From Klebsormidium nitens (Eukaryota; Plantae; Klebsormidiophyceae), in the NCBI GenBank assembly GCA_000708835.1, contig DF237064.1, positions 1-64,000 on the forward strand: a DNA stretch of 64,000 bases, written 5' to 3'. The notes beneath the pieces were generated by a model. That model saw only the letters and a program-made list of their open reading frames with translations, ran no database searches and was not told the origin of the DNA. Shown piece by piece: positions 8,848 to 61,800 of this stretch. The position numbers were made by a program, and so were the translations under genes. Positions within the stretch are counted from its first letter, which is position 1. Every line of letters starts with the position of its first letter.

Positions 8848-10958
8848 ATTGCCCACCCGCTCCCGAAGACTGGGTACAAGGCCCCGAACGCGTATGGAGC
8901 GAAGCCAATCTTCCAAGACGCCACGTAAGCGCCCTAGCCTACCTGCTTTCTCTTGTCAGAACTTTGCCGAAGGAATTGTTCCTGAGCGTGCTGGTTTATC
9001 GAGCGCCGTTTGGGACTCTAGTAGCTGACGTCGGGTCGTTACGTCAGACACACTCGGGATATTGCCGGCTAAAACCGAGTCGTTCCGGTGTATTTCGGGT
9101 GCTTTGGGGAAGCAATCCGGAGACGGGTTCGGGCCGAAAGCCGTCCAGCTGGATGAATCTGAACGATGTTTAGGCACGACGACTGAACCGTCTCGACCAG
9201 TTTCGGACGCAGAGCGGCCCCCATAGAGCATCAGCGAACCAGACGGACAGCTTTGGGACGCAGTTTCGGCCCCTAGAGAGAATCAACGGACCAAATGGAC
9301 AAGTTGCGGACGATAATTTACTGGTTGGACGCTCTTTGGACGCAGGACGACGGGGTCCGCGCAGAAGGCCGTCCAGAAGGTGGGCGACGAGAAGAAGAAG
9401 CAGCTGATGCCGTACGCGCCCAACGCGTCGCGCAACCGGCCCGCGGAGACGCGCACCAACACCGTCGGGCGGCGGACGATCTCCACACGAAACGCCAGCC
9501 AAGTCAGGTGGGCCTTCTATTTACGAATCTTTCTGAATGTACATATGCCCTTACCCGATTTTGTGTCCATTTGGATTCAGGGGAATGCGCATGAAATCGT
9601 CGGGCGGTCGATCGCCACCCACCCGCAGCCAAGTCAGGTGGGCCTTCAGATTCCCCTGGATTTTCAGTTGGTGACGTGTCATCTCTTAGGTTGTGGATTC
9701 TTCAAATAACCCCTCCCAGGAAAGCCAGCCAAGTCAGGTGGGCCGAACCCAACATTCTTCAGATTCTGCGGCGCCGCTCATCGAGATTCTAGGGGCCTGG
9801 ACTCACAGCGAGACGCGCGAAATCCAAAGGGGGTGAAGGATGATGTCCACACGGAACACTAGCCAAGTCAGGAAGCCGCCTGATCTCTCGAATATGAGAT
9901 GCAATTCTCGCATCATGTCTTCTGGATTCAAGAACACGCGCAAGCACACTTGGGCGGCGGCCGTTCCCACCCGGAACGCCGGCCATGCCATGTAGACGAT
10001 CCGATCTTCTAAATTATCCAAGGCTTGAACAGGCGAGCTCTTGGGTTTTGAATTCTGTTAGATTGAAAAGATGCGCAAGATACCCTCCGGCGGCGGACAA
10101 TCGCCACCCGGTACGCGCGCAAGACCAGGTGGCTTTTCAATTGAGATCAGAAGTTCGGCTGGACTCCTACCATGAGCTTTCATTCGGCAGCGAAAGAAAG
10201 GAACGCTTCGTTCTAAGAGTCTCTGTCAACAGTTCTTGTTCATCTTGCGCCGCCTGATGTTCCTGGCAGACCGTCATCAATGTACCTCCACCAATTGCTG
10301 TGAAATTTTGCCCACACTTGCTTTAGAACTTCTGCGTGCCTGAGGTACGGGCTTTAGAGGTCGTCCGAATTTCGTGACCAACAAACGTTACTGGGTCCTC
10401 AATCAGAGCTCTGACCCCTACAGGTTAGCAGACGGTGACCCCGACTCCCGGCGGCCTTCAAAGACGACGAACCAGGTTTACTCGGAGGGGATCCTGAAAA
10501 CGGACGTCATCGGACTCAGCAACCAGGGCATCTCGGCAGGTGGGTTGGTAAAACCCTCTTTGTAAACCCGGGGACGGTTAGCACTTGACATGGCTGCGTG
10601 TTTTTGTCGAGTTGGGCTGATTAACCCTGCATTGAAAACCGGGTCAACCGCGGGGGGTTCAGTGCTATCGGAGGAGTTTATTCATCGAGCCAAGGAATAA
10701 GGAGACAACCAGCTAGGAGCAGCGGAGATTGGCTTCGAAGTCAATCGTACATTTCTAGAAACTTGTCAACTCTCATTGAAGACGACTGCATACTTTGTCG
10801 CACCACAGCCAAGCGTGTCTCAATCTACCCACTTTGATCCGGCAGCTCCTTTACCCGAGGTTTCCGCCTGAATCGAGCAACTGCGCCTCAGCTGAACCGT
10901 TGTAATTTTGCCACCTGCAGAGATTGCAAGGAACATGCATGCGAAGCAGAGGCGATAG
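8848..10958 (+). CDS. Hypothetical basic protein, 5'-incomplete; exons 8848-8924, 9346-9507, 10424-10539, 10921-10958
   Basis: Four GT-AG exons with matching phases (0/2/2/1) give 130 aa ending in TAG: IAHPLPKTGYKAPNAYGAKPIFQDATTTGSAQKAVQKVGDEKKKQLMPYAPNASRNRPAE...LSNQGISAEIARNMHAKQRR. Exon 2 has strong GC3 codon bias. No family recognised; start exon not found. Confidence 0.65.
9490..9880 (+). repeat. Donor-side exon echoes: four copies of GCCAAGTCAG|G(T/A), the end of exon 9346-9507
   Basis: cagccaagtcaggtgggcc at ~9497 (the real donor), ~9626 and ~9726; tagccaagtcaggaagcc at ~9860. Confidence 0.85.
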
Positions 10959-12711: not shown

Positions 12712-15700
12712 TCAGAACGACTTCAACTCATGCAACAAAAGAGGGTCGACTTCGACCTTTTGACTGTCTGTAATCTCGGCGGCGCTGAACGCCCCGGAAT
12801 GACCGCTCGGTAAGCGGCGGGCGCCAGAGCCGCTCGCGGCCGCGCCTCCGTCTGAGCCCGGCTGAGCGGGCGGGGAATCGTTCTGCTTCTTGTCCAGGAT
12901 GATCTGAAACGACAACTTGCCACGTCTAAGAAGTCGAAACGTAAATGAATTTAGCAATAAGACGAGACAACTAGCACGGGGACACGAGACACCGCATTCG
13001 AGCGGACTCCACCAAGTCGAGGACCTAGTACCGCTACGTCGCAAATGCATGCCACAGGAAGGACCTAAGATGTGGATAGGGGAACGACTGGCTCTATTGC
13101 ACACGAAACACCAAATATGACGGGGAGTGACGTGGGGAGGTAACAGCCTACGCCGATAGGAAGAAAAGGGTTGAAACTCGACGAACGAAGCAAAAAGTTG
13201 AGCAGATGTCCGAGGTCTAGGGTCCTGTTGTCCCGGATCAGGAAGCTGTCAGCAACCCACACCCGCCTTCCTTCGGCAATGCAAGTTGAGCAACGAAAAC
13301 CGCAGCGAAGTGTTCTGGGTCCATCAGCTGAACCTTAAGTGCTTGCCGAACAATGAAAGCCAAAGGCTAGGATTGCCCGCCTGATCCCGGGCCCCGCACT
13401 TAACATCAGTCCTTACTCAGACTCTAGGGCTAACGTCAGCAATCCAAAGGCAAACAGAAACGGAAAAGAAGCGAATGTTAAACCTAGTCGCTTTACTTCC
13501 GCTCACCAGGCGGCCGTCCCTGTCAGGTAGAACACGATGCAGTCCCCCGGGGCTAAGTCCAACGGCTGACGTCAGCGACAGAAGGTAGATCAATGCGCCG
13601 AAATCAGCAAATAGAGAGTGGAAAGAGAAACACCGAACCCCGGACGCCTTGCTGTCGCTCACCAGGCGTCCGTCGTTTACCCGATGGCGCCCCCCCGGGG
13701 CTGATTCAAAGTGCTGACGTCAGCAATACCAAAGCCAAAGTTCCGCGCTATAATAACGAAAATCAGCACTCGGAAAAGAAGAGCGGCGAGTCTCAGTGTC
13801 TACCAGGCGACCATTCTCTGCCCGGTAGATAGAGAATAAGTTACCGAGGGCTAAAGCAAAGCGCTGAGATCGGCGAAAGCAAATGCAGATTGGATTTCGA
13901 AAGCAATAAACTTCTCTCGCTTACCAGGCGGCGGTCGTCTGCCCGGTAGAAAGCGAGAAGATCCCCTGGCGCGAGCCCGCGCGATTGGAGGAAGTCGCCC
14001 GCGTGCTCCAGAACGTACATTCGGCTCCTGTTGTTGAGCCAGACGCTGCAAAGAGGATGGGCATTTATGGTCTTCATTCCCGATCGAAATGTATCCCTTT
14101 CGTGGCTGGAAAGAACGTTTCCCGCGTGCTCGAAGACGTACATCCGGCTCCTGTCAAGCCATACGCTGCAAAGAACGAAACGAGCGCTGATTATACTGTG
14201 CTCCAATCCAATGAATCCGTTTTGTGCTCCAATCCAATGACTCCGTTTTGTGTCGACAGCTGGACCCACTATCCGGCACCAAGTGGCTCTGTCGTCTTTC
14301 TCGGGTCGCTAGCTTTCGTGGGTGGACAGAAAGAAGCGATCTTCGCGAACCCCTCGAGCTATTTCAGTCTCCAAGAACCATCTGCTGCGGGAAAACGAGC
14401 AGTCGAGTGGGAATGGTCAAGCTGCAAAAGGAAGGGCCGGGGAAAAACGGTCGAACGCCAACTAACGTCCTGCCCGCATTCCCTTAGCTCGATCCCTGCA
14501 GCTGACAAAACTGATGGAAAAGCCGCTTCTTGGAAACGGCCTTCCTATGTACTGAGCCTCCCCGTGTTTTCATCAGAAGCAGAGCAGACAAACGCAACGG
14601 AAGTGCCGGTTTTGGCAACGGCCTTACCTGTAGCGGAGCTGCCACGTCTTCCCGTCAGCGTCCGTCACTGTCAGGGTGCAGCTCTCCTTGCCGGCCATCC
14701 GAGGCAGATGCCCCTCCGCTTGAACCTGCGGAGATGAAGCCGCTTCAGGGTTGAGAAACCGGTTGCTTGCCCCCTATAACTTCCAAAACTAAACTAGTGT
14801 GCAGGACTTCACAAATTTCCTGCACATATTGGTTCCTTTTTCCCCCGTCCATGAATGATAAGCACTCCCATGTAATTTCACCAGCGGGATGCACGAACCA
14901 TGACGCTGTAAACAGTCTCGTCAGAGGGGGCCAATCGCTTGCTCCTGCTTCCAAGACCGCAAGACCCCATTCCAAGACGGATGACAGTTTCGCAGTTGCT
15001 AAAACGGAAGGGCGACAAACAAGCTCGTTCAAAAACATAAAAGATCTTCTAGCATTTGCAAGACCGGAACAGAAATGAGCGCGACTTCAGACAGTCGCAT
15101 ATCCACACAACCAGAAAAGCGTCCCCTTGCGAAGAAAACAATCCGTTGAGCCGCTGTAACGGCCTTCGCGGCGGTAAGAAGATACGTGCAAGAATAAGGG
15201 CGTCCCACAAAAGGAAGATTGTTGACTGACCTTGGGCATGACGATCCTTCCCAACGGATTGGTGTCGCTTATCGTCAGCGCCTTCTCGAACAGGTACGTG
15301 CAGCCCGGGAGCTCCGCCGTGACCTTCCGCTCCTGCGATTCCGTCCGTTCCATCCGTCCGGCGGAATGCCGCCTCTCACCTCCAAAAGAAGGCCGGAAAT
15401 CGCCGGAAGCATTTCTGGACGGGTTAGGGAAGCTGTTGACAAGCTCTGGGATTGACTGGGGTGAATGGGCACCGACTTGGTGACTAGGGGTTTGACGTTC
15501 TTGACTACTCTGGTTAGCGAAACCCGCCATTGCTGAAGTCAGCTGCTGACTCTCACCCGCAGTTCCTGCGGGCTGGTCAGCGTTAACCGAGGTGATTCCG
15601 GCCTCGATCCCCCAGTGAGAAAGATCTATCGACGGAAAAGATGGGAGAGTGCTCAACGTTCGGCCTCCCGACCCGTCCCAAACCGCTTGGCTGGGAGCGC

Positions 15701-19390: not shown

Positions 19391-19736
19391 NNNNNNNNNN
19401 NNNNNNNNNNNNNNNNNNNNNNNNNNNNNNNNNNNNNNNNNNNNNNNNNNNNNNNNNNNNNNNNNNNNNNNNNNNNNNNNNNNNNNNNNNNNNNNNNNNN
19501 NNNNNNNNNNNNNNNNNNNNNNNNNNNNNNNNNNNNNNNNNNNNNNNNNNNNNNNNNNNNNNNNNNNNNNNNNNNNNNNNNNNNNNNNNNNNNNNNNNNN
19601 NNNNNNNNNNNNNNNNNNNNNNNNNNNNNNNNNNNNNNNNNNNNNNNNNNNNNNNNNNNNNNNNNNNNNNNNNNNNNNNNNNNNNNNNNNNNNNNNNNNN
19701 NNNNNNNNNNNNNNNNNNNNNNNNNNNNNNNNNNNN
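19391..19736. other. Assembly gap (346 N)
   Basis: Run of N in the sequence. Confidence 1.
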
Positions 19737-19945
19737 CGGTACACGACACCGATTCCCCGACAGCCTTGCGACGGTGGGTTTCAGGATAATTTCATTTTCA
19801 TTTTTGCCAATAGTTTCAAGTTCTACCGAGGAGGGCTCGAAGTTGGAGAGTGGAGGCGCGCCGGCCAGAGGACTGGCGCCTTTTTCACACTATCATCCTG
19901 TTGGCTTTGCAAGAGACATTCCTAGTAGCATGGTAACATTCTAAG

Positions 19946-21229: not shown

Positions 21230-21379
21230 GAAGATCTACTAAGTCATGGCTTTTGGTTGTCGATGGTCTAGAGCACTGGGAGTCGGTGGCGGCTGGATGG
21301 GACATAGCGTATCTGGCGGATTCGGTTGCAGTGCCAAAATCTGAAACGGCCACGCTACCGGAGCATTCGACAGGCTAGT

Positions 21380-34400: not shown

Positions 34401-36504
34401 TATCGCCACGCTGGATTGAGAAACTCACAAACGAAATGACAATTGCATTTGATGGAGGCGGAAGTTAGTAAGAGCGCCCATGGTTGGTCTGCTGTGCTTC
34501 GGCGAACCTAGCCCGAAGAATCGGTTCTGCCCACGACCAATTGCACTGACATTGCTCTGGTTCACCATCGACAGAATGTTCATATGACTGTCCGACAGAA
34601 TGTTAATATGACCGTGCGACAGAATGCCAACGTGACCGTCCCACAAAGTCCTGCCCCCAGGCCCCAGCCGAGGCCCAACCGTTCTCTCGCAGGATTTATT
34701 CTAGAACAGCTGGGCACAGGCTCGGTCTCAATGAGCCAGAACCAAGGCCCAATTGTGGCTGAAAGATGAGAACACCATACGAGACCAAGAAAGAAGCAAC
34801 AGCTGCAACAATAATGGCTAATTCAGATAACTGGCATTGGCAAAGATGGACACTGCTGCAGAAGATAGTGCCGAGACTTCTTCGGACTGTTCAAAGACGG
34901 TGGCCTCTCGTTGAGGAGTGCGGCAGATCCTGAGCGAAATTGTCTGTTGCGGCGCATCCGTGAAGAATAAACGGGAACACCTGTTTCGACCACCCCTTGG
35001 AACGGAAAGTTTGATGTGGCCCAAAAGGTGTTCCGTTCTCCAGCATCTTCGGATCAGCGACGGACGCGTGTTTTGGGGCTATATCGACAAGAAAGCAGGA
35101 AAGTCCAGAAGGGGAAAAACTGACCTGTGCTTTCTATCAGGAGCCTCCTGCTGCCGGAAATGACGTTTGAGGCACGTGTTGCTCTTGCATACAAAGAGGA
35201 AGAGGGTGCGGTGGAACGCAGAAGGCTCGGACTCGAGAGGTCCGTACACCTGTGAAAGCGATCAATGAGAAGAAGAGCACCTCAACAATGTTCATTGCGA
35301 ACCTCATCACTACTGACCTCACTATTGTCACCACCAATTTGACGAGATTGGATTGAGTTCTTGCAGTCACTACCTTACTTTTTCCACATCAACAACACTA
35401 CGGAATCGCTTGTTGGTGGCAGCTTTTCACAGTGTAATCACGGTCGTGGCAGTGTTCCTTCCATGTAGACGGACGTGGAAGGTTGCCCGTAAAATCACAA
35501 ATGCCAAGACAAGGTTGGAGAACTGTGGTGCATTCTGCTGCCCAAATCCAGAAAACATCATGCCCAGCCGAAGAAAGCGTGATGGATTAATTTCAAGAAG
35601 CAGGGACATAAAGTAGTAGCCACCTGATGCATGGTGAAAAAGTCCGAATATTCTGAGCTTTACAGACTCCTTTGTGGTAAAACTGTAACCGGTACTTCCG
35701 TCGCCGGGGAAGTACTAACTTGAACAGAACTTGGCACACGAACAAAAGCATAAGAGCCCCAAACTATCTCGACCACCACCACTGCTAAAATCAAACAAGA
35801 ACCATAAGCGCCCACACACAATCTTATTGTGTTTTACTTGCTTTTTGTTTTCTAAAAGATTCTAGCCACACCCAGCTCATTTTTGATGGGGTCCGCAGAC
35901 AGGCACACCCCGTCGAAGAAAAATAAGCCCTCACACTCTGAAACCTCAATGCTTGCATATTCAACCACCACGACACGTACAATATGGACCGCTGAATGCT
36001 GCCAACATTTGGGAGCAAACCCTTACTAAACTCCAACTCTTTGACCGCACTCGAAGTCTAGTTGGTAATGGTGGCGCCCAAGGAGACAGTCTTCTTTTAA
36101 AATAGGAACATGCTCATATCTTTCACATATCAACTTGTAATTGAATTCCAAAAGATATAAAGGCTGCTTTTCTCATGAGCTGTTTTTCCACAACGGAACA
36201 GCATTTTGCAGAGTCCTGTCACACGCCAAGATACCAGATTGATATGCGGTGGTGCAACACTTACCTGCATCAGAAATGCAAGGGGTTTGCCGCAAAAGCC
36301 GCACACTGTTGCTCCCCCCTGCGGCAGCTTTACAGGGTCGAGCCATGCCGGCACACCCCCAACCTTGCTTGGAAAGAAATGCCGCTCAAGGGATTCCGGA
36401 TTTGCTGCTTCGTCCACAAACCCTAAAAGAACCTCTTCTTCCTCCTCTCCTTCCGATTCCACCTCCTCCTCGTCTTCCGAGAAAACCTCCTCTAATTTCA
36501 CCAT
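31493..36504 (-). CDS. PDCD2: Programmed cell death protein 2 (zf-MYND + PDCD2_C), 658 aa; exons 36504-36265, 35249-35125, 34112-33929, 33619-32460, 31760-31493
   Basis: Contains FPSKVGGVPAWL, CGFCGKPLAFLMQVYGP, AFHRTLFLFVC, VRVFRCQLPRSNPFYS, the MYND finger CDWCG...CGGC...YCSKDHQVEHWRAGHSVAC, and EQVLRYCR...PLW...IPPCPECGSERIFEFQVLPQLL...LDWGTIAVYTC. Splice phases are consistent. Confidence 0.95.
34130..34345 (-). repeat. Two ~102-nt acceptor-side echoes of PDCD2 exon 3
   Basis: Copies of the exon start at 34214 and 34316 versus the real start at 34112; on the plus strand gagtggaagggg.tggagcg..gaagctggca recurs in each. Confidence 0.9.
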
Positions 36505-41100: not shown

Positions 41101-42274
41101 AACACTTGTCCAGGTAGGGGCCCGCGAAGCAGAGTTTGCAGATCAAGCAACTGGTTCGGGAAGAGTTGGCTCTCCAGATTTTACTGTTTGTGGGCGAGGT
41201 CTTGGTTATTCAACTAATCAGTTCATTCGTCGTTTGTTAGGAAGGGAGTCGATGTGGTGGCCTCGAAAAGGTGTCAGAAGTGGCATTGTTCGAGCTTGAT
41301 GACCCGCTCGTACTTTCTCAATCTCGGTTGGAGTGCCCAATGAGTCCCCTTTGTTGTTTTTGAAAACGAAGACATCCCCACAACCTCTCTGATAAGTCCG
41401 TTCATGTAGAGGCTGACTTCGTTTGCTTTCTCAGTCCTCTTTCCTTCCCAGGTGCTCAATATTCGATCCGTCTCACCTCCCCAAAGACTGGTGTTGTCCC
41501 CACCGTTTGTCCTTCGGATTTCCGAGAAGCTCGAGGCTAGCCGCCTCTCCATTATCCGGCGCCCATTGCCACCTCTAAAAGTAGTCTTTACCACAACTTC
41601 CTTCTCAGACCTTCCTCTTCTAAAGTCTTCGAACAATGCCGTACGGGAAATTGCCATCTGCCCACTCGGCCCGCTTCCAGGTGCTCAATTCTTTGGCCGT
41701 CCTCCCATCATCCGCGTCCCCAAGCACCCTGAACCATGCGGTACCCCTCCTCTCACATCTTCACGCCTTACGGAAGATCCACGCCTTGCGGAAGATCCTT
41801 TACCATCCGCTCACTCGGTTCCCCTCCCTCTCCAGGTGCTCAACTTCCTGGCCGTCCTCGCCGCCCTCGACCCCCGCTGCCGCGAGGAGATCTGCAACAG
41901 CAGCTGCCAGTACCAGCTGCAGCGCTTCGTGCGGCCGCCCGGCCTGACGAGCCCCCGCAAGAGCTACGCGGCCGTCATAAAAGAGGAGAAAAAGCCCGGG
42001 AGCGACGCGCCGCTCGAAGTGGACGAGACGCTGGTGGCCGAGGAGCATGCGGCCCTGGTGCACTTCCTTCTGCAGGTGGGTTAGGGCGTCGTTTCTTTTT
42101 TGGGTTAGTGTTGAGGCTGAGTTTGGGTGCGGCGAGTTGGGGTTGAAGCGTGCACTAACCATGTACCGAAACCTTGGATGATCAAAACGGGTTTCCTTCA
42201 AACAGGTTTGGTCGAGGTTGGTGATGGCCGACGGTCAGGATGTGCCAAAAGGTTTACAGAGCGATTTTCATTGA
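38157..42274 (+). CDS. Armadillo-repeat protein (>=428 aa); exons 38157-38291, 39049-39288, 39922-40192, 40509-40699, 40973-41113, 41836-42075, 42206-42274; 5' end uncertain
   Basis: Phase-consistent GT-AG exons with ARM-like helices: GCGILRLVALLSAQSSSVRFNALLVLVNFL, LGALRKFALLL, GCMAKIVSWLG, AGPLMALV, QGCVLLLVGLL. An acceptor-like ttcag at ~38135 suggests extra upstream exon(s). Confidence 0.82.
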
Positions 42275-46824: not shown

Positions 46825-49800
46825 TTACCGGTAAGAGCTGCCCCCGAACCGACGTATTCTAAACCGCCCGACGCCCGTTTCACTCTTGAGACTGACGCTC
46901 CCAGTGCTCTTCTCCGCACGGGGGGATCCCCCGGGCCGTTGCGCCGCCTCTGGTTTCGCTATCGGGACCCCATCTGTTGCCAACCGGGGGGACGCGATCG
47001 GCGGCAGATTTCCGGCGACGCTCTCCCGCCGAAGGCTAGAGTTATGCAGCAGAAAGGTCGCCGCGTCGGGAGTCCCCGGCCGCTGAGTCGACGACTGCCG
47101 CCGGCCGTCGACGAGCCAGTTCGGCGCAGACGCGTCGATCCAGGACGGCGCCACGTCGGCGCCCGGTTCAGTCCCCCGGGCTTCGACCTCTTCCGAAGCT
47201 CGCCTTCCGGGGGCTTCGCTCATCCGCCGCTCTAGGAGTTGGACCAGCGGATTCCGCTCGGGGGCTTGGCTCAATCTTCCGTCTGGCGCTTGACTCATTT
47301 TCCTCTCTGGCGCTTGGCTCATTCTTCTCTCGGGTGATTGATCCGTGGAGGGGTGGTTTGTTGACTTGCGCGAAACACGACTACCGACGGGTGACTCGAC
47401 GTTTTCCCTGGCACTGACTTGAGACATTTTCCTTTCGTTTTCTATAGACGCTGCGTTCGACTCTCTTAGATGGTGGTCATATTGCTGCGCTTTCTGGTGG
47501 AGGGGGAACAGTTTCAGCGGCCGGGCGTTCTTCCGGGGGATCATCTTCGGGTCCTTCGTGCCCGGTAGGTGCAGCCCGAGCGCCTTCCGCTCCGCGCGCG
47601 CCATGTTGCGCGCGGCCACGTGGCACCGCGGGTGGTCTGCCCCGAGCTCCGACTGGAAGAGCAGGAGGGCGATCTCGAGCAACTCAATTGCCTGCAGGAA
47701 GGTCGAATGTAATTTTGAGAGACAAAGAGGCTAGCTTGAGTTCCGAGCAGGCATTGGAGATAAGGAATGGCAAGGCGGGCAAGCTCGAGCAATTCAGTCG
47801 CCTGCAGGAAGGTTGGATGCAAGCTTGAGATTGAAGCAGAAGCGCTAGAAAGAAAAGGATCGAGCACGATTGAAGCAGAAACCCAAAAAAGAGCATGCAT
47901 GCGTCTATTGTATTGTACAGCGCGGAAACCATTTTCGGGAAAGCGAGACTCTTTGACAATGTTTGGCTATTCCGATGGACATTATATCGTCATAAATGAA
48001 GACGGAACGCGAGGATCGGCGCTCGTAAAGTCCAAAAAGACGTCCGGACTCGAGCATCCCACAACCATGTACCCATGCAAAGTACGGGTGAAACTCAAAC
48101 AAAGAGCACGCAGTGCAAGTATAACTCGGTTATATGCCTCCACGCGTCTTCAGAGAGGCAAGTGGCGATGATTAGAATACACGTGATCAATTGAAAGGCT
48201 GACACGTGGCAGGCGCGTTCTTGCCTTGTGGATCTGGCCGCACCGCTCCAGGCAGCACGCCATGTTGTGGTACGTCAGCGCCAGGTCAGCCTGTGGGGCG
48301 CCGGATTCGGCTTCCTTCTCGCGGAATGTCTGCAGCAACGGGCTCTGCTTACGTCAGCACATTGCCGAGAACTTCTCGGATCCCTTCTAGCAGGTTTTGT
48401 GATGTGCTTCCTTGCTTTGACTGGTTTTAAGAGTGTACATTCTCTTGGGAAGAATCTGCGCAGGTAAACGCATCGCGCGACTCCAAAGAGTATCAGAAAC
48501 CGTCGGCATACCCGCAGAACTTCTCAAAGCTTGCAACCCTGAACTCGCTAGAAAGCTTATGAAGCAACGAAAGCCAGAGCACACAACCGACGGCGAAAGT
48601 TTCTCCGACCGCCGCTCCTTGACGTCACTTCAACCTGCTTCGAGGACGGATCACGTGACGTCACTTGCCATGGTTTCTAGGAAGAGCTCAAACGCCTTGG
48701 CGAAGTCGCCGCGGTGGAAGTGCGCGCACGCCCGGCAGCTCGTCGGGAGGACCTTCGCGGGCGCGTCCGCGTCCAGCTTCGCGGCCGCGTCGGCCGCCTC
48801 CTGCGAGGGTTCAGGTGAAGGTTTTAGCTGAAGGATTGCGGAAGGCTTTCGCGCAATTTAAGGGACCTCTCGTGTCCAGATTCCAGCCTTCGGCCGCCTC
48901 CTGCGGAAAGGTTTACGTGCTTAGGTGCAGGCCTCTCGAAGAACCACAAGAAAGTCCGCGTCGGGGTATGCGGCTGCGTAAAGTTATTTCCAGCCAGAGG
49001 GTTTAGAGTTGAAGCATTTTTGCATTACTAAAGACCAGGGCCCTTGGCTTGTTTCAGAAAGCTAACATGTAAGCGGTCGTCTTCCGGAGAGTCATTGCGC
49101 AACTGTGAAAGTGAGTTCAACTCCGGTTCTGAAACTTCTAGTACTTAAACTTCTAAGCACTGTTCCGACTCATTTACATTTGCCTCGGTGTTTTCCCAGC
49201 ACTAACTAGTGCACGGTCAATTCAACTTCCCTCCCCCCACGATTGTAAGCATCCCGATTGTCATCACGATTGTAAGTGAATTTTCCTTTACCTGGTATTT
49301 CTCCAGCGCCAGATCGTCTTGCCCCATGCTCTCGTAGACCCCCCCCACCGCGCACCCCAAAAACACGCACGCCTCTGACGTCATCTTGGCGCGCCCGTCC
49401 GCTTGACAGGCGGCCATCCACAGCTCTTCCGCGAGTCGAAACGCCAAAAGTGCCTCGTCGAATCTGCCCACGGTGTGGCAGTAGACGGCGCGTTCGATCT
49501 GGGCTTCGACGCTTGGGGGTGCGTCGGGGGCGCAGATGACCTCTCGGATAAGACCTGCAGAAAGGCCGAGGCAGAAACTCGTCCGGTGGTGTGAATTTAA
49601 TCCTATGATCTGCTATTCTCATCGTTCCATGGGAACGGGCCGCAAAAGCGCAATCGTAGGACCAACACTATGATCAGACCTGCTTGCTGGAAGACGGAGC
49701 CATCTAATGCGGTTTAACAATCATCTCCGCATTAGTCCGCTGATCAACGCCGTGATCTCATTAAAATAACGCCGAGGTAGTCGACGCACAAATCGAGCCG

Positions 49801-52800
49801 CATGTAGAACGGGAAGTCGGTGCTTAGTCTCCACTTTTACCGGTCAACCAACGCGGTATCCAGTTACACAATGCCCTTCCGTCAACGGGCCAAAGCCGCG
49901 GAGAAACCATCTCAGCTGAGAACCTGAGAGCTAAGCTAAAAACACCCGCTTCCGGACTTACACAGTGGAAAGTCGGTGCTCGATCCCCAGTACCACCGGT
50001 CAGCTGACGCGGGGTCCAGCTTTAGGGACAGCCACGGGTTCGCCGGCGCCTCCGACTTGGCTTTCCCCTTTCTTTCCCTCTTTCCGCCGGTCGTCTTGGG
50101 CCGGATCTTCATGAAGTCGAGCAGCGCCCGGACCTTGTCCCCGGGCGACGGATACCTCTCGGCGTCCCTGCATATGAGTGACACGAATATCAGGGTTTTG
50201 GTTTTCGAGATTTCAGGGTTTTATCGTCCTTTTTTCCCTCGTCTTTTCCTTCCTCCCGTCGTTTTGGGCCGCAATCTCATCAAGTCGAGCAGCGCCCGGA
50301 GCTTTTCCCCGGGCGACGGATACTTTTCGGCATCCCTGCAAATGAGTGCCAGGGAACTTTTGGGTCTCTATCCCGACTTTCCGGCGCAACATTGATAAGT
50401 TGTCGAATTCACCCTCCGCGAACGGCGCCGTTCTGAGAGCCCATCAAATTGAAACTTATTCAAACCTTCAAAAGTCACCTTTGTTTCTGATCTCAGTATA
50501 GGACACAAAAGTTACAGATCGGAAGGAGCCCATGACGTCAGCACGTTGCACACCGGAGGGCCCTTTTAGTTTGAGACTCATTCAGCAGCGCAACGAGAAC
50601 AGGTTGGAACTCCAAAGCAAAGACTCTCAAGAGGTGCCCACAAAGACTCTGCCAAAAAGGAAAGGGCCGCCGGATCGGGTGGTGTCAAGGGGCTTACTTC
50701 CTCGTGGAGTAGGCCATCATTGACACCAGGCTGAGCGCCTCCAGGAACTCAGAGTACGTCATGCTGAGGTAATTGCCGTCACCCCGTGGTCCGAACTTGG
50801 CCTTCCGGAACGCCACCTCCAGCCGCCGGCGGGTGACCCTACAACGACACGTGCCCATTTATGACGTCAGCTCGTGCGAAGAAGACAGCTCCGGAGCTTA
50901 CTTGATACCTTGCCTTGTTACTTTGTCGAAAAGTAGCATAGGGTATTGTTTTCTTTGTTCCCTTAGCCCGTCTTTCTGGTCTATCTGCTCACCATTTGGC
51001 GGCACTCAGGGGTTCTGACAGTACTCGCATGCCGCACAAGCTGCGCATCACCAGCGTTCCCCGCTGGTGGAATGACTTCAAGCACAGTTAAGCAAGCTTT
51101 TGTCGTTCTCCAAATGCAAGTGACGTGTTTGGCGGTAGAACCTTGTCTTTTGCTTCACGTCTAACGCTCCATAATGGCGACGGAACGTCTCCGTTACATA
51201 ACCCAGACTCGTCGTATACACAGGGAAGGCGCAAAGCAAGCGGATCAAACGGGGAGGGCAAAAAGCGGTAAACATGAAGAAGCAATTGACCCGAAGGTCA
51301 ATACTTCGGCCGGAACGAGACGAAGGCGCCGAGCGAAAAGGGCACGGAACGGGAACAGACTCAGAGCAACCATCCTGGAATCAGTGGAAGAAATTTAGCG
51401 GATCAGAAGCGTGCGAGACCGGAGCGAAACGACTGACGCCATTAGTTTTGGGACCGCCTCACATTCTGGGCATGAGGTCGTGCTTCGCGCACAGGGTTTT
51501 GAACTCCGCCGCGCTGAGGGCGGCCGCGGCGTCAGCGGGCGCGGCGCCCCACGCGGCCTTGCCCGTGAAGCCGACGTTCACGCTGTCCACGCCCGCGAAG
51601 GAGGCGAACAGCGCGCGCAGCGCGACCTCGTTCTCCTGGAACACCTCGGTGACGTCACGGTCGACTGCGGAAGGGGAGGAGTGACGTCAGCACACTTCAA
51701 TTCAAGTTTTTGTACGTGCGACGTTCACGCTGTTCACGCCCGCGAAGGAGGTGAACAGCGCGCGCAGCGCGACCTCGTTCTCCTGGAATACATCGGTGAC
51801 GTCACGGTCCACTGCAAGAAAAGAAGGCACGGTATCATCATTCTCGAACTTTTGATCCTTTGAAGCCGATGTTCACACTGTCCACGCCCGCGAAGAAAGA
51901 GAACAACATGCGTAGGCGTCCTCCGTTTCCTGGATTATCTCGGTGACCTCATCTTAGACTGGCTTGCCTTTTGATGCAGCATCTTCGACTTGCGAACGAA
52001 GTCCGCTGGAAACGAAAGCACAGTGATGACGATACTCCAGAATCCCCTGACACTCGAAACACAGGTTCGCGTGATCGAAACAATCTGAAAGGATGACGTC
52101 AGCGGAGACTCACGGATGACGTCCTGGAAGTCTGCCACGTCCTGGTTGACGCGGCGCGCGACGGGCGCGATGTGCTTCTCCACCAGGTAGCGGTACGCGG
52201 CCGCGGCGTCGGGCGCGTCCGGGAACTTGGTCAGCGCGATGCTCGTCAGGACGTCCGCGAAGCGCTCGCGGCTCAGCCCCGTGATCTGCAAACAGTCAAG
52301 GATGACGTCAGTAAACGGATCTAGATCTGTTTTCTATTCTGTGTTGTACGTGGTCGTGTCAATCTTCTGGAATGAAAGGTCCGTGAGGTTCGCCAGAGGA
52401 CGTCAGCGAAGCACGGGACGGCTCAGCCACGCAATCTGCGGGGCACGACATGATGACGTCAGCTCAAGAAAAGAAGACCCGCCGCCTCTTTGTTTCACTA
52501 CGTGGTTGTGAGACACGATCCAGAAACGCAGAAGTCCAGGGACACCTCGCTAGAGTTGCAGTCGGAAATTTGAAGAAGTATGAACTGTCCAACCAGACAT
52601 ATTTCTCTTCCAAGCCCTGTGTTCGCTGTGTTGCTGCGAAATGCAAATAGTCCAAAGACGGGAAGCTCTTCCAACCAGGTCTGGCCCCTTAAAGCCTAAA
52701 CCACTCATCCTGCTGTTTGATTCGGGCGGCGCTCTGGTGGCATTCAGGAAGAGCAACTTCATGTCCTTGGCCAAGAGGCTCTCCTAAGGTTGTAAAACTT

Positions 52801-55800
52801 ATGACTCCTCAAATCTCAGAAGCCTGAACCGTTGGACCCGGGCTGCGCTTTAGTCGCCTCCAAAGAGAGCAGGTCTATGTCCCCCGCCTTAACGCCCTCC
52901 AAGCCTAAAATACAACCTTAAACCGAATCCCCAAAACCTACACGCCCACCTTGACACTTGACCCGGGCGGCGCTTTGGTCGCCTCAAGGAAGAGCAGGTT
53001 CATGTCCGCGGCCGCGAGGCGCTGCCCCTCTGCCAGCTGGCAGTCGCGGCAGATGCGCAGGAAAGCCGGGCGGTCGATCTCCACGCGGTGGTTCACCTCG
53101 CCCAGGCCGCAGTAGCGCGAGAACAGCAGCGTCACCTGGCCGAAACGATGACGTCGGATGACGTCAGGTGACGTATTTTTTGGCCTAATTGCTTTCTCGT
53201 TTTGAATTTGGATCCCGGCAATCGGAAATGGGTGCAGGCCGCAGTACCGTGAGAACAGAAGCGTTACGTGGGAAGAGGAAAAAATGTTAGAGGAAGTCAG
53301 GTACAATTGAGTTTTGGGTACTTGGGATGCAAGACCAAATATCGCTCACCGGTGCTTGACTCTTAGATAGCTAAGGACAATGTCGCCCCTCCTTCAAGAA
53401 GCTTACAGAACAGCTCACCCCAGTTTTATTGTAACTTCTCGACGTTGATTATCTTACTCAAACGAAAACAGTTCCCACAATTGCGGAAAGTATGCATTCG
53501 CTTTTGCGCGCGCAGAAAGGCGACCAAACAGCTGCGCGCACCTCTGCCTCGACCGCCTCGTTCGTTGGCAGCGGCACGTAGTACTTCTCGGGGTGCAGCC
53601 GCTCGTCCTTGAACAGCGCGAGCGCGCGCAGCGTGCGCTCCAGCCTGTGCGCGAGCGTGTTGGCGCCCTTGAACTTGGGCTCCGGGCGCACGATGCTGGC
53701 GCGAGCGACGAAAAGGACGTCAGTACGATAAGTAAGAAGGGCTGAGTCATTCATATTAACGAAAAGCTGACGACAGCGATGCCCGCAGATGTGCGGGAGC
53801 GTGTTCGCCCTTAAAATTGGGCTCCGGGCGCACGATGCTGGCATGTATGACAACGATGATGTCAGCAAAAAGATCACAAGAAGTCCCTGACGCCAGCGAT
53901 GCCCTCGGATGTGCGCGAGCGTGTTGGCGCCGTGAAATCTGGGGGGCGCACGATGCTGACACAAGCGACGAAGATGACGTCAGCACGACGCGTACGACGG
54001 GCTGGATTCAGGAGAAGGACCAAAAGAGAGCCGACGTCAGCAATAAAGTCGGACGTACGCGGGCGTGATTGCGGCTTACACGCTTCTTCGGCACACTATG
54101 CTGGCGGGAACGGATAGAAGATGCAGCGGGGCAACTTGTCACAACGAGAGTGACGTCAGCAGGACTAGTGAGAGCGCCGCCGGTGCACAATCGTGGTCGT
54201 GCCCTTTGACTCCGATTTGAAGTGCACGATGCTGGCGCTCGGATTAGCCACATGTTTCCGAAACGCAACGACAAGCAGTCGGCACCTGTGAGTGGTGTGT
54301 CGCTGCAGATTTCCCACATGTTCATTATTTCCGCGACATTTAAACGACATCTGTGAGTTGTGTGTCGCCGCAGAGCCACGTGGGCCTCACTTCGCCGCGC
54401 AGAGCAGGATCGTCTCCAGAAACTCCGGAAACAGCAGCACCCTGGGTCCCTGTAAACGCCTCGGATACGGCCTCTCGCCCAGATGCAAGGCCTCGACGAC
54501 ACGTGGCACGTTGGCGTCGATTGAGAGCAGGCCCGAGCCGCGCAGCAGTTGGAGTGCCAGCTGGCAGCCGATGCTGCAGTTCTCGCGCTCCACGTGGAGA
54601 CGCGTGGCGAGCGCGGATTCGTCGAAGAGCGCGGCCTTGTTGCCGTCGTTGGCGAGGTAGGCAAATACCTGACGGGGTTAAAAAGAGTTAAGAGAGGGTT
54701 AGGTGATATGGAAAAAGGTGCCGGGGTTGACTAGAAGGTTTACAGACGGTTAAGAGAATGGAAAAGGTTGGCTTGGTTAAGAAGAGTTGACAAGGTTCAG
54801 GAATATCGAAAAAACTAGTGGCCAACTAAGACAGGTCTAAAGATGGTCAGGAACACTAGAGCGAAACGACCAGAAGGGTTGAGGCCATCACTACCTAGAG
54901 ATGATCAAATTCCTTTGCAGATACCGCCAAAAGTTGTGTAGGTATACCTTCTTGGTGCTTGATGGGCTTACCACTGAATAGATGGTGTCCCAGTCTATTC
55001 AGTAGCACAGGGAAGAAAGCTCGCTTCAAAAGAGATGGTGAGAACTTTGATTTTCTGAAAGTGCCCCCGGGTGCGCGTTGGCAGCTTTGTCGAGTAGACA
55101 AGTGGCGGATGAAAGCACTCACACTCCAACTCTCATGCTTACATTATTCCTTCCAGTCGTTCTGAAAATGTTTCGCCAATTCATCGCTATGTTTGTGTGC
55201 CATAGCTTACCTGATACAACATGACGAGATCCCCCTGCAGCATCTGGAAGTGCTCCGGCTTCATGATCCCGGGGAAAGCCCGGTCCATCACCACCCGCTG
55301 CTCCAGAGCTGCCACGTGGCGGCCCAGGAGCTGCCGCGTGAACGCATCCTCCTCAGACTCGGTACGTACCGCTCCTGCAACCGTTTCCACCGGCTTTGCG
55401 GCGACGAAGTTCGATGCAGGAGTGGTGGGTCGCGTCGGGCTTCCGCGCATTCCGGTGGCAGTAACGGAACCGGACAGCTTCCGTGTTCTGTGATCTGAAG
55501 CGGGACGGGAACCAAGCACCGGGGAGGTTTCCCACCGGTTACCCCGCCGCGCCGAGACGCCGCTTGCCAACCCGCGCTGCGACTGGGGTGATGCCACGTG
55601 GCCGTCTGAGATGACGTCAGCGATGAGCTCCGCCAGAACGAGGTCTACCTCGTCCTCGACGCTGAGGACGCCGGCGGATGGACCGCCCGGCGGACTGATC
55701 AACGGAACGGTCACCGGAATGCTCAGGGCCGGAACGGCTATCGGAACCGCGGAATACTCCTTGGCCGCCTCTCTCTTGTGGGCGAACAACACCGTCGAGA

Positions 55801-58800: not shown

Positions 58801-61800
58801 TGCTTCGCGATCTCCAGCAGAAATTGAAACGCGAGCATCCAGAACGGGCGGAATCTCGAGAGGAGAGACTTCAAACGTCCACGAGAAATTGTTGAGCTTT
58901 TGAACGCGACCCCTTTGCAACAGCACTGTCGCAATTATCCGCGCAGACTGTGCTGTCGGTCCGGCCTGCGCTGAAGGCGATTCGAAACCGTACGGTAAAT
59001 AGTCCGGTAAGTCTTCTCGTAGGGCAACGACGCCGGCTGACTACCATCCAGAGCCCGCTGTCCAAATCGGACAGTGTTGCGTTTCCGGACAGAGATCCAA
59101 GATCGGACGCTCACCTGCGTACAAAAGACGTCCGCCAACGCCTGCACGCGCCGCGGCGCCTGTCGGCTGGGCTCGGACGCGTGGCCCAGCTGTCCGGAGC
59201 GTCCGCAGCCCCACGTCAGCAGCTCGCCGCCTTCCAGAACCGCAGCGCTGTGCTGCTGCCCGCACGCGATTTGCGCCGTCCGAGTTTCCGTTCCGCTCAG
59301 CGCCGGGACGAGCGCCGGAATGCGCCGCTCCTCCACGTCGTCGAAGCCCAGCTGTCCGCAATCGTTCGCGCCCCAAGCGAAAACCTGACACGTGCAATCA
59401 TGGATTTTCGGAATATGGATAAAGTAAACCACACCTAAACTGAGTAATCTTTCTACTTTTTGCTGCTCAGAGCATGTCGGGCTGTAAGTTCAATTCTGGC
59501 AATTGCAGAGGTAAAAATGCAGCAGAGAAGAGTGGCGCAAAAAGAGAATACGGATCGGTAAAATCAAAAGTAAGAGCTTTCCGAAAGAAGGAAGATAACA
59601 GAGGCTTTTCAACATCAGGCTTCGCTTGAGGCGAAGTGACTAGCACTCTTGTCTATCCATCAAGGGGGAATGTAATCTCTGACATCAATCGCGCTGAAAG
59701 GAGCAAAGCACTTACGTGACCGTTGGACAGGAGTGCTATTGAATGTTCGGCGCCACAGGCGATTTGGGCGACCGGCTGGGGCAGCTGCAGGAGAACCGGG
59801 GTCGCCCAGCTGCGGTTCCCGTTCTGCACAGTGGAACGGCGTACCATGAAACCTCCCTTGACAATCAGCATGGCCCTCAGCATTCGGAGGGAACATAAGA
59901 TCAGCATGCTGTCATGGAGGACTTTTGTGAGCCGCCCAACACCTTGAGAAGCTTCATCTGTTCAACCTCTTTTCCGTGTGCTCATCCGCATTTGCAAAGA
60001 TTTGCGCGGCCAGCGATAATCGCCCGACGGATCGTTTCTTCAGCCGTTGTGAAGCGCCTAAGTCTGAATCTTATTTACCTCGTAAAGTCGACCCTGCTGC
60101 TGATGAGAGACCAGTCACAGGATGATTCGCAACCGGTCAAGTCATAGCGTCATCCAAAACTTCGTTACCAAACTCACCCCGTTCCGGTCCCGCCGCAGCC
60201 CAAGCTGCCCCTTGTTATTATGCCCCCACATGTACAGATCCCCCGCTGACGTCAGCGCGGCCGCGTGGCGCGCGCCGGCCGCGACCGCCGTGAAAACCCT
60301 CTCCGCGAGCGCCGTGTGCGGCCGGAGGCAGAACTTGGGCCCTTCCGCGGCCGCCTGTCCTTTGACGTTGTCGCCCCAGGTGTAAATGGGGGTGTGCTTA
60401 GCTTCCCCACGCAAGAGCTGCCACACGTCGTACCTGTAAGAAGGGGGCGCGAAGATCTCGGAAGGGGTGTCGAAACTTTGGGCTTTAATAGACGCCGTTC
60501 TCAGGTGTAAATGGAGGTGTGCGTTGCGTCCCCGCGCAAGAGCTGCCCTACGTCGTGCCTGCGGAGAGGAGGGCGCGGAGAATCGGAAAGGGTTCGGTTC
60601 GGATTTGGTGAGCTTTTGGTCTGACGTTTTTGGATTTGTTTATGGGGGTATCGAGCTGTCGCTCCAGGTATAGACCGGGGTGTGCGTTGCATCACCCCTC
60701 GAGAGCTGCCACACGTCGTACCTGTGGAAGGAGGGGCTGGAATCACTCCGGAAGGTCTGAATATCTGTGGACCTCGGGTGTGTCTTGCTTTCTCTGCAAG
60801 GGCTGCCACACGTTGAACCTGTGGGAAGGGGCGCGCGTAAAACTGGGATTGGAGAAATCTGGAAGTGTCTTGGATCTGCTACGCTTTTGCTTCTGGACTT
60901 TGAAGCTATCGGCCCAAGTAAAGACTAGGGCCTGCTTCGGTTCCCCTCGGCAAGAGCTGCTTCACGTCGTGCCTGAGGGAAGAGGGCGAGGATTGCTTGA
61001 GGCGTTCAGAAACTTTTCTGTGTTGTTGTCAACCTCTTGTCGTCCGACGTGGAATTGAGAATGCGCTTCGCTTCTTCTCACAAGACTTTCCACACGTTGC
61101 GACTTTGGAATCAAGGGGGTTCAGAGTCGGAAGGCACCCGAACGACAGTCTCTCGTTTCTTTTTGTTTGCATCGATTTGACACAGGACAATCTTCGCGCA
61201 ATCCGATCCGAGGCAACACTCTGCAGCCCCGCTTTGGAGATTAGTTGACTTTGCGGTCAAAAGATGATTCAAATAGCAAAGCCCCTCACCCTTCATCGCG
61301 CCCCGCCCCGCCGACCCTGCGCGGCCGCATTGGCGCGGGCACCTCCACCCGCTGCTTCTCGATCCCCTTGATTACCGCTTCCGGCTTTTCCGCCACCACT
61401 TCGATCTCCTCCTCCCAATCGCCCGCAACGCTTTCGTCATCGACCAAAATCTCGTCCGCTTTTGTTACTTCCTCTTCTCCCCCACCCTCGAGCGCAGCCT
61501 CTTCAGTATCTTCCCCGTTTTCCACCCCCTCTTTCTGTGTCTTCGTCTGATTCTCGCTCCCCGCCTCCTCATCGCTCTCATCGTCCCCCGAACTTTCCCC
61601 CTCGCTGCTGATGCTGTCCTCAAACGAAGCCTTGACTCTGTTCTTTCGGACATTCATCCCCTTTTGTCCCATTTCAGAAGCCTTCCCTGTCCCCGGACTA
61701 CGTATCACCCCCGCACTCTTGGCAGGCAAACCGACCCCCGAAACGTTCTTCCCGGCTGCCGTCGCTCCCCCCCGCCCTGCAACACTACCAATGCTTGCTT

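Follow-up and report, generated by a model that had tools for sequence, protein, structure and literature searches.

Introns of five genes in the 64-kb window (the whole stretch of DNA analysed here) contain imperfect copies of their own exon edges, and these are probably the relics of serial, short tandem duplications at the DNA level which overlapped exon edges and lengthened the introns. A junction-by-junction search of the window, with a cut-off score of at least 29, found 32 diverged units at 16 junctions in 15 introns, each consisting of an exon edge and its splice site; we call these units echoes. The duplicated unit is about 100-170 bp long (mean 131), since echoes are spaced by 97-168 nt (131 +/- 20 nt over 30 intervals). 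They are 72-95% identical to the real copy, i.e. 5-28% diverged. The original prediction, of one to four imperfect tandem copies of exon boundaries in more than a dozen introns of five genes, was confirmed by self-comparison, with the correction that the maximum is five copies. As it had also stated, copies on the acceptor side are found upstream of the real exon, those on the donor side downstream of it, and only part of the exon is copied: each echo holds 24-106 nt from a source exon of 121-260 nt, and no whole-exon copy was present among the units. Recognisable echo accounts for 21% of the sequence in the affected 15 introns, or for as much as 46% if unit spacing is used, which supports the predicted recurrent duplication straddling splice sites and lengthening introns.

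Significant repeats in the window are all local and direct. Self-BLAST gave 38 direct matches scoring 30 bits or more within 1 kb, no inverted match of that score within 1 kb, and about 4 direct matches beyond 5 kb; the 20 matches with E<=1e-3 all join sequences within 540 nt of each other. Repeat families obtained with TRF and by repeat finding agree with self-BLAST. Between 48500 and 54499, Smith-Waterman comparison of introns with adjacent exons produced scores of 36-162 in 7 of 16 pairs, and the maximum among the 56 non-adjacent pairs was 26. The rest of the 64-kb window is devoid of local repeats, in agreement with the reported absence of copies in the ARV1, LBD and UVI4-like genes.

In most arrays homology extends into the intron part of the unit (70 nt in PDCD2, 68 nt in ARM, 49 nt in G53.6 and 35 nt in G60.4), meaning that these are true head-to-tail duplications of a segment straddling the junction. 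Within the unit the junction can fall anywhere between 20 and 65% of the length, and breakpoints are not fixed. Acceptor-side units always include at least about 30-50 nt of intron, with branch point and pyrimidine tract, and donor-side units hold intron sequence past the GT; for six acceptor-side echoes, homology starts only 4-9 nt upstream of the AG. Microhomology at unit breakpoints was discarded as a criterion, the copies being too decayed for reliable reading.

Coordinates are collected in the table. Nine exons of the giant RCC1/TPR gene, between 48500 and 54499, were fixed by RNA contigs from two runs and a relative's transcriptome, and their introns are all GT..AG. Exon boundaries outside 48.5-54.5 kb were deduced from open frames, motifs and GT/AG rather than from RNA, and the frame of the B3 exon was set from the B3-like peptide VWLNNRSRMYVLEHAGDF. 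A Pfam search of single-exon ORFs confirmed RCC1, MYND and a weak F-box only; the B3, ARM and PDCD2 identities come from motifs read by eye and from the original prediction. A coding map based on codon usage, tried for the genic/intergenic split, was abandoned because it was too weak in lower-GC genes.

Table. Exon-edge echoes and other features of the 64-kb window (scores, spacing and identities as found in the search).
Feature	Position	Strand	Source exon or junction	Details
Hypothetical gene, array of five donor-side echoes	9461..10142	+	exon end 9507, GT 9508-9509	spacing 130, 100, 134, 120, 137 nt; GT kept in 4 of 5
Hypothetical gene, individual echoes	9603-9647, 9713-9744, 9838-9872, 9936-9993, 10082-10132	+		identity to real copy 83, 91, 86, 75, 75%
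B3 gene, three donor-side echoes	13500..13835	-	exon end 13925	units 13801-13835, 13652-13683, 13500-13553; GT kept in all
B3 gene, one acceptor-side echo	14121..14174	-	exon start 14045	120 nt upstream; CAG kept; 82.5% identity, one 3-nt indel
Assembly gap	19391..19736	.		346 N in AT-rich sequence; not part of the echo phenomenon; >5 kb from any array
MYND/PDCD2-like gene, three acceptor-side units	34183..34862	-	exon start 34112	102-nt units 34183-34284 and 34285-34335, remote copy 34831-34862; period 102, 2.5 copies; AG -> AC in one echo
ARM gene, one donor-side echo	39397..39491	+	donor 39288/39289	135 nt downstream; 79% identity; 27 nt of exon end, GT and 68 nt of intron
ARM gene, one acceptor-side echo	41651..41704	+	exon start 41836	about 150 nt upstream; 75% identity; CAG kept
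Giant gene, acceptor-side echo	47773..47830	-	exon start 47691	spacing 110 nt
Giant gene, acceptor-side echo	48871..48905	-	exon 48669-48800 (from RNA)	
Giant gene, donor-side echo	49811..49863	-	exon 49962-50167	GT lost
Giant gene, acceptor-side echo	50247..50351	-	exon 49962-50167	spacing 168 nt; 85% identity; score 110; 89-106 nt of exon start, CAG and pyrimidine tract
Giant gene, two acceptor-side echoes	51735..51961	-	exon 51463-51664	147-nt units; score 162
Giant gene, acceptor-side echo	52397..52439	-	exon 52114-52285	
Giant gene, two donor-side echoes	52717..52898	-	exon 52950-53135	spacing 125, 116 nt; GT lost in both; score 62
Giant gene, acceptor-side echo	53235..53271	-	exon 52950-53135	AG -> AC
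Giant gene, three acceptor-side echoes	53790..54238	-	exon 53542-53695	score 72
Intron-only tandem duplicate	54280..54374	-	adjoins donor of exon 54391	65-nt period
Giant gene, five acceptor-side echoes	60504..61106	-	first RCC1 exon, start 60433 (RCC1 from Pfam)	spacing 125, 163, 97, 154, 130 nt

The giant gene alone accounts for 18 echo units at 10 junctions. Its largest array, which fills most of the 857-nt first intron, illustrates the relation between identity and position: identity drops with distance from the exon, from 81 and 81% to 77, 74 and 72%. Over all arrays, identity is lower the further a unit ranks from the junction (Spearman -0.74, P 7e-5), and in 4 of the 7 multi-copy arrays no echo resembles another echo more than it does the real copy. 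Elsewhere the order is less simple. The two proximal units of the 53790..54238 array are 82% alike, compared to 70-75% with the real copy, which indicates echo-to-echo duplication. The two distal units of the B3 donor array are 70% alike, compared to 49-56% with the real copy. In the proximal echo at 51.7 kb the exon part is 95% identical to the real exon and the intron part only 51%; plain duplication followed by decay does not account for this one, which needs gene conversion or another origin. The 65-nt repeat at 54280..54374 is the sole local repeat of the window without a recognisable exon part.

Differences between echo and exon are distributed over the three codon positions as 15.7, 12.1 and 23.9%, giving a dN/dS of 0.46 (CI 0.34-0.61). 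The original prediction had taken the conservative differences as a sign of non-neutral evolution. This argument is not supported: the ratio matches that of a simulated copy decaying freely beside an exon under purifying selection (0.43-0.51). Most echoes carry frameshifting indels, and GC to AT changes outnumber AT to GC changes (110 vs 70, P 0.0035). In-frame stops are somewhat rarer than expected, 2 instead of 5-6 (P about 0.06-0.09), a shortage that counts against the duplication model. Between two related contigs, L002 and L003, orthologous echoes are 71% identical, below the introns (80-88%) and the exons (92-93%). The copies thus look like unused debris decaying neutrally. As for the idea that they archive older exon versions, it holds in a trivial sense only, as it would for any dead copy, which retains some ancestral states, and nothing points to allelic versions.

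In the relatives, arrays of this kind occur at different junctions of the same gene, from which we conclude that they are specific to lineages and that the process continues. Among the introns checked, those flanking exons A-F are present in L002 and L003, and intron 1 in L001, L002 and L003. The L001 contig ends within the orthologous array. One data set from a relative, X18, is listed as DNA, and its spliced sequences identify it as RNA.

The predicted retention of AG or GT in most echoes proved correct, with 26 of 32 keeping it, but neutral decay at the 14% divergence estimated for the echo lineage would leave it in about 24. Among echo acceptors, AG is kept in 18 of 20, and the pyrimidine fraction is 0.70, compared to 0.75 at real sites and 0.48 in the background; to judge from their sequence, these acceptors still look competent. 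In the RNA contigs of three transcriptomes, where rare isoforms tend to drop out, no joint at an echo splice site was found and every joint used the site next to the full exon. The predicted alternative or NMD-coupled splice sites are not supported by these contigs; a rare use of competent-looking acceptors would nevertheless escape them, a point to be weighed against the duplication model. Recursive splicing through echo acceptors was rejected as a general explanation, as only 3 of 11 real exons begin with GT. Over the whole window there were 0 Rfam 15 matches at gathering thresholds, and a snoRNA or miRNA array is not indicated.

Could the arrays be produced by assembly, for instance through collapsed or stuttered haplotypes? 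The window does contain one N gap, and Logan DNA contigs break within the youngest array, the one with 95% identity. However, copies diverged by 5-28% are far above assembler stutter, and the same array pattern occurs in relatives assembled by others. Independent contigs match with 0 differences. For the DNA runs, Logan contigs extend over 48609-51635 and 51759-54499; for RNA, unspliced contigs obtained from libraries of other studies include the arrays at 49.8, 52.7-52.9 and 53.7-54.4 kb, and one unspliced RNA-run contig (53666-54420) covers the entire 53790..54238 array. The confident arrays nearest to the gap end near 14174 and begin at 34183, with a sub-threshold 28-point match at 14313-14331; the gap being more than 5 kb from the arrays, the finding is independent of it. 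We regard an artefact as a negligible risk. A functional system, with echoes that provide alternative or NMD-coupled sites, act as splice-site decoys or store older or allelic exon versions, also appears very improbable. It would fit the CAG and pyrimidine tract kept by echo acceptors, the B3 acceptor echo, which is in frame and open for 120 nt up to the real exon, and the shortage of in-frame stops, although the latter is not significant. It would also fit the core motif CAG/G or CAG/GT found at 58 of 59 sites (P 2.6e-5, flank identity 79-80%) when only echo alignments reaching 10 nt or more to either side of the junction are taken. Such alignments are, however, chosen for a conserved junction, and we rejected this count as evidence of selection, the figure for all echoes being close to neutral expectation. 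Against function also stand the neutral-like dN/dS with its frequent frameshifts, the silence of echo sites in the three transcriptomes, the orthologous echoes less conserved than introns, and the differences in arrays among relatives.

Two other accounts concern the link with junctions. Duplications of ~130 bp might occur uniformly, only those straddling a junction being harmless and lasting enough to be detected, so that the association would reflect selection and detection. This would explain why echoes hold partial exons only, why acceptor-side units contain their minimum of intron, and why whole-exon copies are absent, and it agrees with the variable junction position; moreover, echo-exon pairs stay detectable longer because the exon evolves slowly. 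Yet duplicates internal to introns should be neutral, and detectable when young, whereas only 3 lie wholly inside introns and 18 young units were born at junctions. Compared with uniform placement, this excess has a P of 0.006 in the most conservative test, with ancestral introns taken without echo sequence, and of 2e-6 if introns are given the lengths they have today. No such repeats occur in echo-free introns of 320-1000 nt, nor in the long stretches at 1-9 kb and 14.4-34 kb, and we find this account unlikely. Still harder to believe than a function is an RNA-mediated origin, in which pre-mRNA or splicing intermediates were reverse-transcribed and inserted back close to the junction. The junction link and the six acceptor-side echoes with short upstream homology would be accounted for; but units are head-to-tail and mostly carry a homologous intron part, breakpoints fall off the branch point and splice site, the short-homology echoes still carry a pyrimidine tract and not the end of the upstream exon, and donor-side units include intron sequence after the GT. 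A variant with reverse transcription halting at the branch point was rejected, as unit starts do not match the branch-point motif.

We therefore favour serial DNA duplication, which probably proceeds as follows. A short tandem duplication would copy a segment overlapping one exon edge. With a partial exon, a single splice site and no partner across the exon, the extra copy would be skipped by the splicing machinery and stay in the intron, leaving the mRNA unchanged and the duplication harmless, hence tolerated. New units mostly arise beside the working junction, producing the gradient of identity with distance described above. To judge from three arrays, some units may later have been duplicated from another echo, lost when unequal exchange collapsed the array, or replaced in part through gene conversion by the exon. 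Copies then decay neutrally to an intron-like composition, as the substitutions reported above illustrate, and the net outcome would be intron growth.

The duplication model does not itself explain the preference for junctions, for which the conservative test is only moderately significant. Because edges are over-represented relative to uniform placement in introns, a bias linked to chromatin, replication or transcription/splicing is probably involved. A stronger proposal, which we put forward tentatively and hold to be possible rather than likely, is that Klebsormidium-type algae have a duplication mechanism aimed at exon edges, which would time and again copy ~130 bp across working splice junctions and be one of the main forces behind intron growth in this lineage. 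Candidate links are with exon-positioned nucleosomes, Okazaki-fragment processing, R-loops or co-transcriptional splicing. Should the junction bias prove mutational, gene structure or chromatin would be linked to a specific class of ~130-bp duplications; if the mechanism is truly aimed at edges, it would be an undescribed mutational process reading gene structure.

The lengthening of introns, and the large differences in intron size between lineages, are usually credited to transposons and to slow drift by indels; here, between a fifth and nearly half of the sequence in 15 introns can be traced to copies of their own splice junctions. The differences in arrays between close relatives show the process to be recent and datable. 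The arrays also offer a natural experiment on splice-site choice, with dozens of competent-looking pseudo-sites ignored, and they can mislead gene predictors and short-read assemblers.

Several known systems resemble this one in part. Introners and other transposon-derived introns are dispersed families common to many genes and proposed genome-wide drivers of intron sequence gain (PMC9860276). Echoes are likewise proposed to drive the gain of intron sequence, but each matches its own neighbouring exon only, without distant or inverted matches in 64 kb. Terminal repeats and target-site duplications are frequent in introns of the transposon-derived type. Intron gain by internal or tandem duplication has been proposed in the Rogers model, by Hellsten et al. 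2011 and by Gao and Lynch 2009 (reviewed in PMC3443670); in the AGGT model, an exonic segment bearing AGGT is duplicated and the new intron runs between the two AGGT copies (PMC3443670). Our arrays share with it a short tandem duplication within the gene, the surplus copy being spliced out. They differ in that the source segment already held a splice site together with the pyrimidine tract or the beginning of the intron, and in that the introns pre-exist in relatives (L001-L003 for intron 1) and were lengthened rather than created. Tandem exon duplication, reportedly treated by Kondrashov and Koonin in 2001 and by Letunic et al. in 2002, is said to yield mutually exclusive exons or pseudo-exons. 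There too, copies of exon sequence sit in the neighbouring intron; however, that process copies a whole exon with both sites and its frame kept, whereas echoes comprise an edge and one site, with common frameshifts.

A close parallel is the minisatellite in intron 7 of human F7, a VNTR of 37 bp which begins with a unit lying across the donor of exon 7 (Borensztajn et al. 2006, PMC1557585); the pseudo-sites that follow in a row are silent and the authentic site adjacent to the exon is used (PMC1557585). As in F7 IVS7, units are head-to-tail with the first lying across the exon-intron boundary, and the pseudo-sites are silent, at the level of contigs from three transcriptomes. Minisatellite units of this kind are short (10-60 bp), near-identical and polymorphic in copy number; compared by length and identity, echo units of 97-168 nt and 72-95% identity fall outside that class. 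Furthermore, F7 is a single locus with near-identical, polymorphic 37-bp units on the donor side only, whereas the present copies are 5-28% diverged, lie mostly on the acceptor side and occupy 16 junctions of five genes in one 64-kb window. As far as the literature searched goes, the statement that no named element class fits holds, and the copying of exon edges is apparently an undescribed route of intron lengthening.

Self-comparison of the whole window (blastn, word size 7) returned 38 direct matches with 30 bits or more at distances of up to 1 kb, no inverted ones within that distance, and about 4 direct matches beyond 5 kb. All 20 matches with E≤1e-3 lay within 540 nt of each other, and the same repeat families were recovered by TRF and by a second repeat search, with periods of 102 and 147 nt for example. 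The short direct repeats of the window are all local, and their pattern is not a product of chance.

A catalogue was built by a search centred on each junction of five genes (hypothetical, B3, MYND/PDCD2-like, ARM and giant RCC1/TPR). It comprises 32 echoes, i.e. diverged intronic copies of the neighbouring exon edge with its splice site, at 16 junctions in 15 introns. The original prediction had placed such copies in more than a dozen introns of these same genes, acceptor-side copies upstream of the real exon and donor-side copies downstream, and this is the arrangement found (11 acceptor-side arrays with 20 units, 5 donor-side arrays with 12 units). Five echoes precede the first RCC1 exon, and five more follow the donor at 9507 in the hypothetical gene. 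Units are spaced by 97-168 nt (mean 131, SD 20, n=30) and carry 24-106 nt of exon together with the splice site and, in most arrays, 30-110 nt of homologous intron, so that they correspond to head-to-tail duplications of a junction-straddling segment. The 15 affected introns total 9,224 nt, of which 20.6% is aligned echo sequence, or 46% if calculated from unit spacing.

Nine exons of the giant gene, on the minus strand of 48500-54499, were defined by contigs of two RNA runs and of run X18, from a relative. The eight introns between them are all GT..AG, and the joined exons form one reading frame, open throughout. When every intron was aligned to every exon, 7 of the 16 adjacent pairs scored 36-162 and an eighth scored 24, while none of the 56 non-adjacent pairs exceeded 26. 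The self-comparison proposed along with the original prediction thus gave local, direct matches and, in this region, introns matching their adjacent exons. A copy of the adjoining exon edge is present in 7 of the 8 introns; the echo of intron 48801-49291 was detected only when the search included the junction itself, and neither intron-exon alignment nor junction search found an exon-edge copy in intron 50839-51462. Outside this region, junctions were inferred on a basis other than RNA, namely open frames, GT/AG and recognisable motifs (the B3-like VWLNNRSRMY peptide, MYND cysteines, and RCC1, Pfam-confirmed). Run X18 is listed as DNA of a related organism; it shares its exon-exon joints with the RNA runs and does not cover introns, and in this it behaves like a transcriptome. 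Scattered differences from the window (29 listed) are present in its exons. On the minus strand, exon 48330-48225, whose start is backed by a loose end in RNA contigs, appears to end in CACAAG, followed by GCAAGA, at 48225/48224. From the sequence this is a candidate donor of a GC-AG intron, whose splicing would keep the frame into the exon that begins at 47691.

That the arrays are genomic, a point marked for checking in the original prediction, was borne out by Logan contigs (assembled from public sequencing runs). Those of the DNA runs cover 48609-51635 and 51759-54499 with 0 differences, and unspliced low-depth contigs from RNA libraries of other studies match the 49.8, 52.7-52.9 and 53.7-54.4 kb arrays, also with 0 differences. 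Echo copies differ from each other by 5-28%, and the same pattern recurs in relatives whose contigs come from the assemblies of other groups. The N gap (19391-19736) has AT-rich surroundings and lies more than 5 kb from the nearest array; the finding is independent of it. The exon-edge arrays are a real and robust observation.

Positions of repeats and motifs in the window, and echoes and repeats in two homologous loci of relatives
Feature	Window	L002	L003
Sole local repeat without exon part (65-nt duplicate)	54280-54374		
Palindrome TGACGTCA, example sites	50862-50869, 51682-51689, 52303-52310, 53159-53166, 13567-13574, 13715-13722		
TGACGTCA at or near donor	48656-48663		
TGACGTCA within exon start	51650-51657		
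24-nt x3 repeat, coding (RKMSQAPE-like peptide)	47252-47341		
24-nt x3 repeat, PDCD2-like upstream intron or flank	34569-34645		
52-nt x2.2 repeat, just upstream of first coding exon of hypothetical gene	9201-9312		
Exon C acceptor-side echoes		two	one
Exon E acceptor-side echoes		two	one
Exon A acceptor-side echo		none	present
Exon A donor-side echo		present	
Exon C donor-side echo			present
Orthologous introns more than two-fold different in length		15480-16030	16155-17480
Orthologous introns more than two-fold different in length		18680-19030	20012-20850
Tandem repeat, period 120 nt, within large exon E			21721-21984

The best reading of these arrays is serial tandem duplication overlapping the exon junction, followed by neutral decay of the copies; an existing junction would be duplicated, and the existing intron would lengthen. 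The further an echo ranks from the junction, the lower its identity to the real copy (Spearman -0.74, P 7e-5). In 4 of the 7 multi-copy arrays, no echo is closer to another echo than to the real copy, a pattern that fits the birth of new units next to the working junction. In the B3 donor array and the 53.8 kb acceptor-side array of the giant gene, some pairs of echoes resemble each other more than they do the real copy, which points to echo-to-echo duplications. In the 51.7 kb array of the same gene, the proximal echo shares 95% identity with the exon across 93 nt, but only 51% across the 53 nt that lie upstream; gene conversion of an older echo by the exon may account for this pattern, though only in part.

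A functional role for the echoes was weighed against neutral decay. Echo-exon differences in the exon-homologous parts amount to 15.7, 12.1 and 23.9% at the three codon positions, with a dN/dS of 0.46 (bootstrap 0.34-0.61). The conservative nature of the residue differences had been taken to speak against neutral decay. We simulated a freely mutating copy beside an exon accepting synonymous changes only, or 10-20% of non-synonymous ones, and obtained a dN/dS of 0.43-0.51, which includes the observed value, and a third-position ratio of 1.45-1.60, compared to 1.66 observed. Since the neutral copy reproduces the conservative differences, they reflect the constraint on the exon itself, and that argument is lost. 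Most echoes carry frameshifting indels, and echo versus exon transitions number 110 GC>AT against 70 AT>GC (P 0.0035), an excess that is a drift towards intron composition. Most echoes keep AG or GT, as predicted (26 of 32: 18/20 acceptors, 8/12 donors), and about 24 would be expected to do so from decay alone, divergence along the echo lineage being estimated at 14%. The apparently strong conservation of the CAG|G core (58 of 59 sites) was discounted as a sign of selection, as only junction-spanning alignments were counted. Echo acceptors still look competent from their pyrimidine fraction (0.70; real sites 0.75, background AGs 0.48). Among transcript contigs of 48500-54499, which drop rare forms, none joins at an echo splice site. 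Given this and the neutral type of decay, the proposed regulatory or alternative-splicing role found no support, nor did the idea of an archive of older exon versions. The part of the original prediction that stands is the duplication process straddling the splice site.

Comparison with relatives leads in the same direction. Four homologues of the 822-aa first exon were found, and three loci (L001, L002 and L003) were compared, with orthologous exons mapped by tblastx. L002 and L003 are separate contigs from a single JGI sample. Their mutual identity is 92-93% in exons and 80-88% in introns, and they contain 13 and 11 local direct repeats respectively, inverted ones being at most 2. Of the junctions occupied in these two loci, only the exon A acceptor has echoes in the window (five); different junctions being occupied, the arrays are lineage-specific. 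In the single acceptor-side echo of exon C in L003, the 5′ part corresponds to the distal echo of L002 and the 3′ part to the proximal one, a mosaic such as would be expected from unequal exchange between units. Between L002 and L003, orthologous echoes share only 71% identity, less than the intron background, which speaks against a function. In L001, which is more closely related (81% amino-acid identity), there is one echo at 225 nt within intron 1 and another copy where the contig ends. The intron length differences in the Table, despite the exon identity, suggest very fast turnover of intron length in the group. The repeat in exon E of L003, whose period is a multiple of 3, may have been generated by the same process as the echoes, as an in-frame duplicate within an exon.

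The point of interest in the echo arrays is their preference for exon edges. Selection accounts for several features: whole-exon copies would be spliced in, hence partial copies; acceptor-side units always include their own branch-point and pyrimidine region, otherwise the downstream real site would be crippled; and echoes are skipped in splicing as they lack a partner site across an exon. What selection fails to explain is the rarity of wholly intron-internal duplicates. Young duplication events comprise 18 junction-born units versus 3 intron-internal ones, and uniform placement gave a P of 0.006 with all echo sequence removed from ancestral introns, and of 2e-6 with present-day lengths. In the self-comparison of the window, such repeats were absent from echo-free introns of 320-1000 nt and from the long stretches 1-9 kb and 14.4-34 kb. 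The junction lies at about 20 to 65% of the unit, which means that the process is not keyed to the splice-site nucleotide itself. From general knowledge, candidate causes would be exon-positioned nucleosomes with staggered nicks, Okazaki-flap duplications, or fork stalling linked to transcription or R-loops.

Other features of the window were recorded. The palindrome TGACGTCA occurs 22 times versus 0.8 expected, a count reached by no shuffle. In the RNA-supported giant gene it is often located 18-31 nt upstream of the acceptor AG, which is branch-point distance; it is also seen at or near donors and within exon starts, and copies are present in echo units. Intron 50839-51462, which has no echo, includes a 35-nt stretch (51028-51062) that recurs in other contigs of the DNA run and of all three RNA runs, where its long flanking sequences are different. 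It resembles a small transcribed element or motif with other occurrences in the genome. The three short-period repeats in the Table are of a different kind from echoes. The B3 acceptor echo (14046-14165, minus strand) is separated from the real acceptor, downstream of it, by exactly 120 nt, in an open frame (ORF 13844-14308), and use of its AG would add 40 in-frame residues repeating part of the B3 strand.

No known RNA family matched the window (Rfam), and we found no description of the echo pattern in the literature, that on Klebsormidium included; coverage was incomplete, so that the negative result amounts to no more than a lack of evidence. That tandem genomic duplication can give rise to new introns is accepted (review PMC3443670). 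In the AGGT model, duplication of an exonic AGGT segment creates a new intron (PMC3443670), whereas in the present case both the duplicated junction and the growing intron already existed. Introners form dispersed families (PMC9860276), unlike the present echoes, which match their own exon alone. The nearest described case that we found is the minisatellite of human F7 intron 7, in which the first unit, of 37 bp, extends across the donor of exon 7 and the pseudo-donors are silent (PMC1557585).
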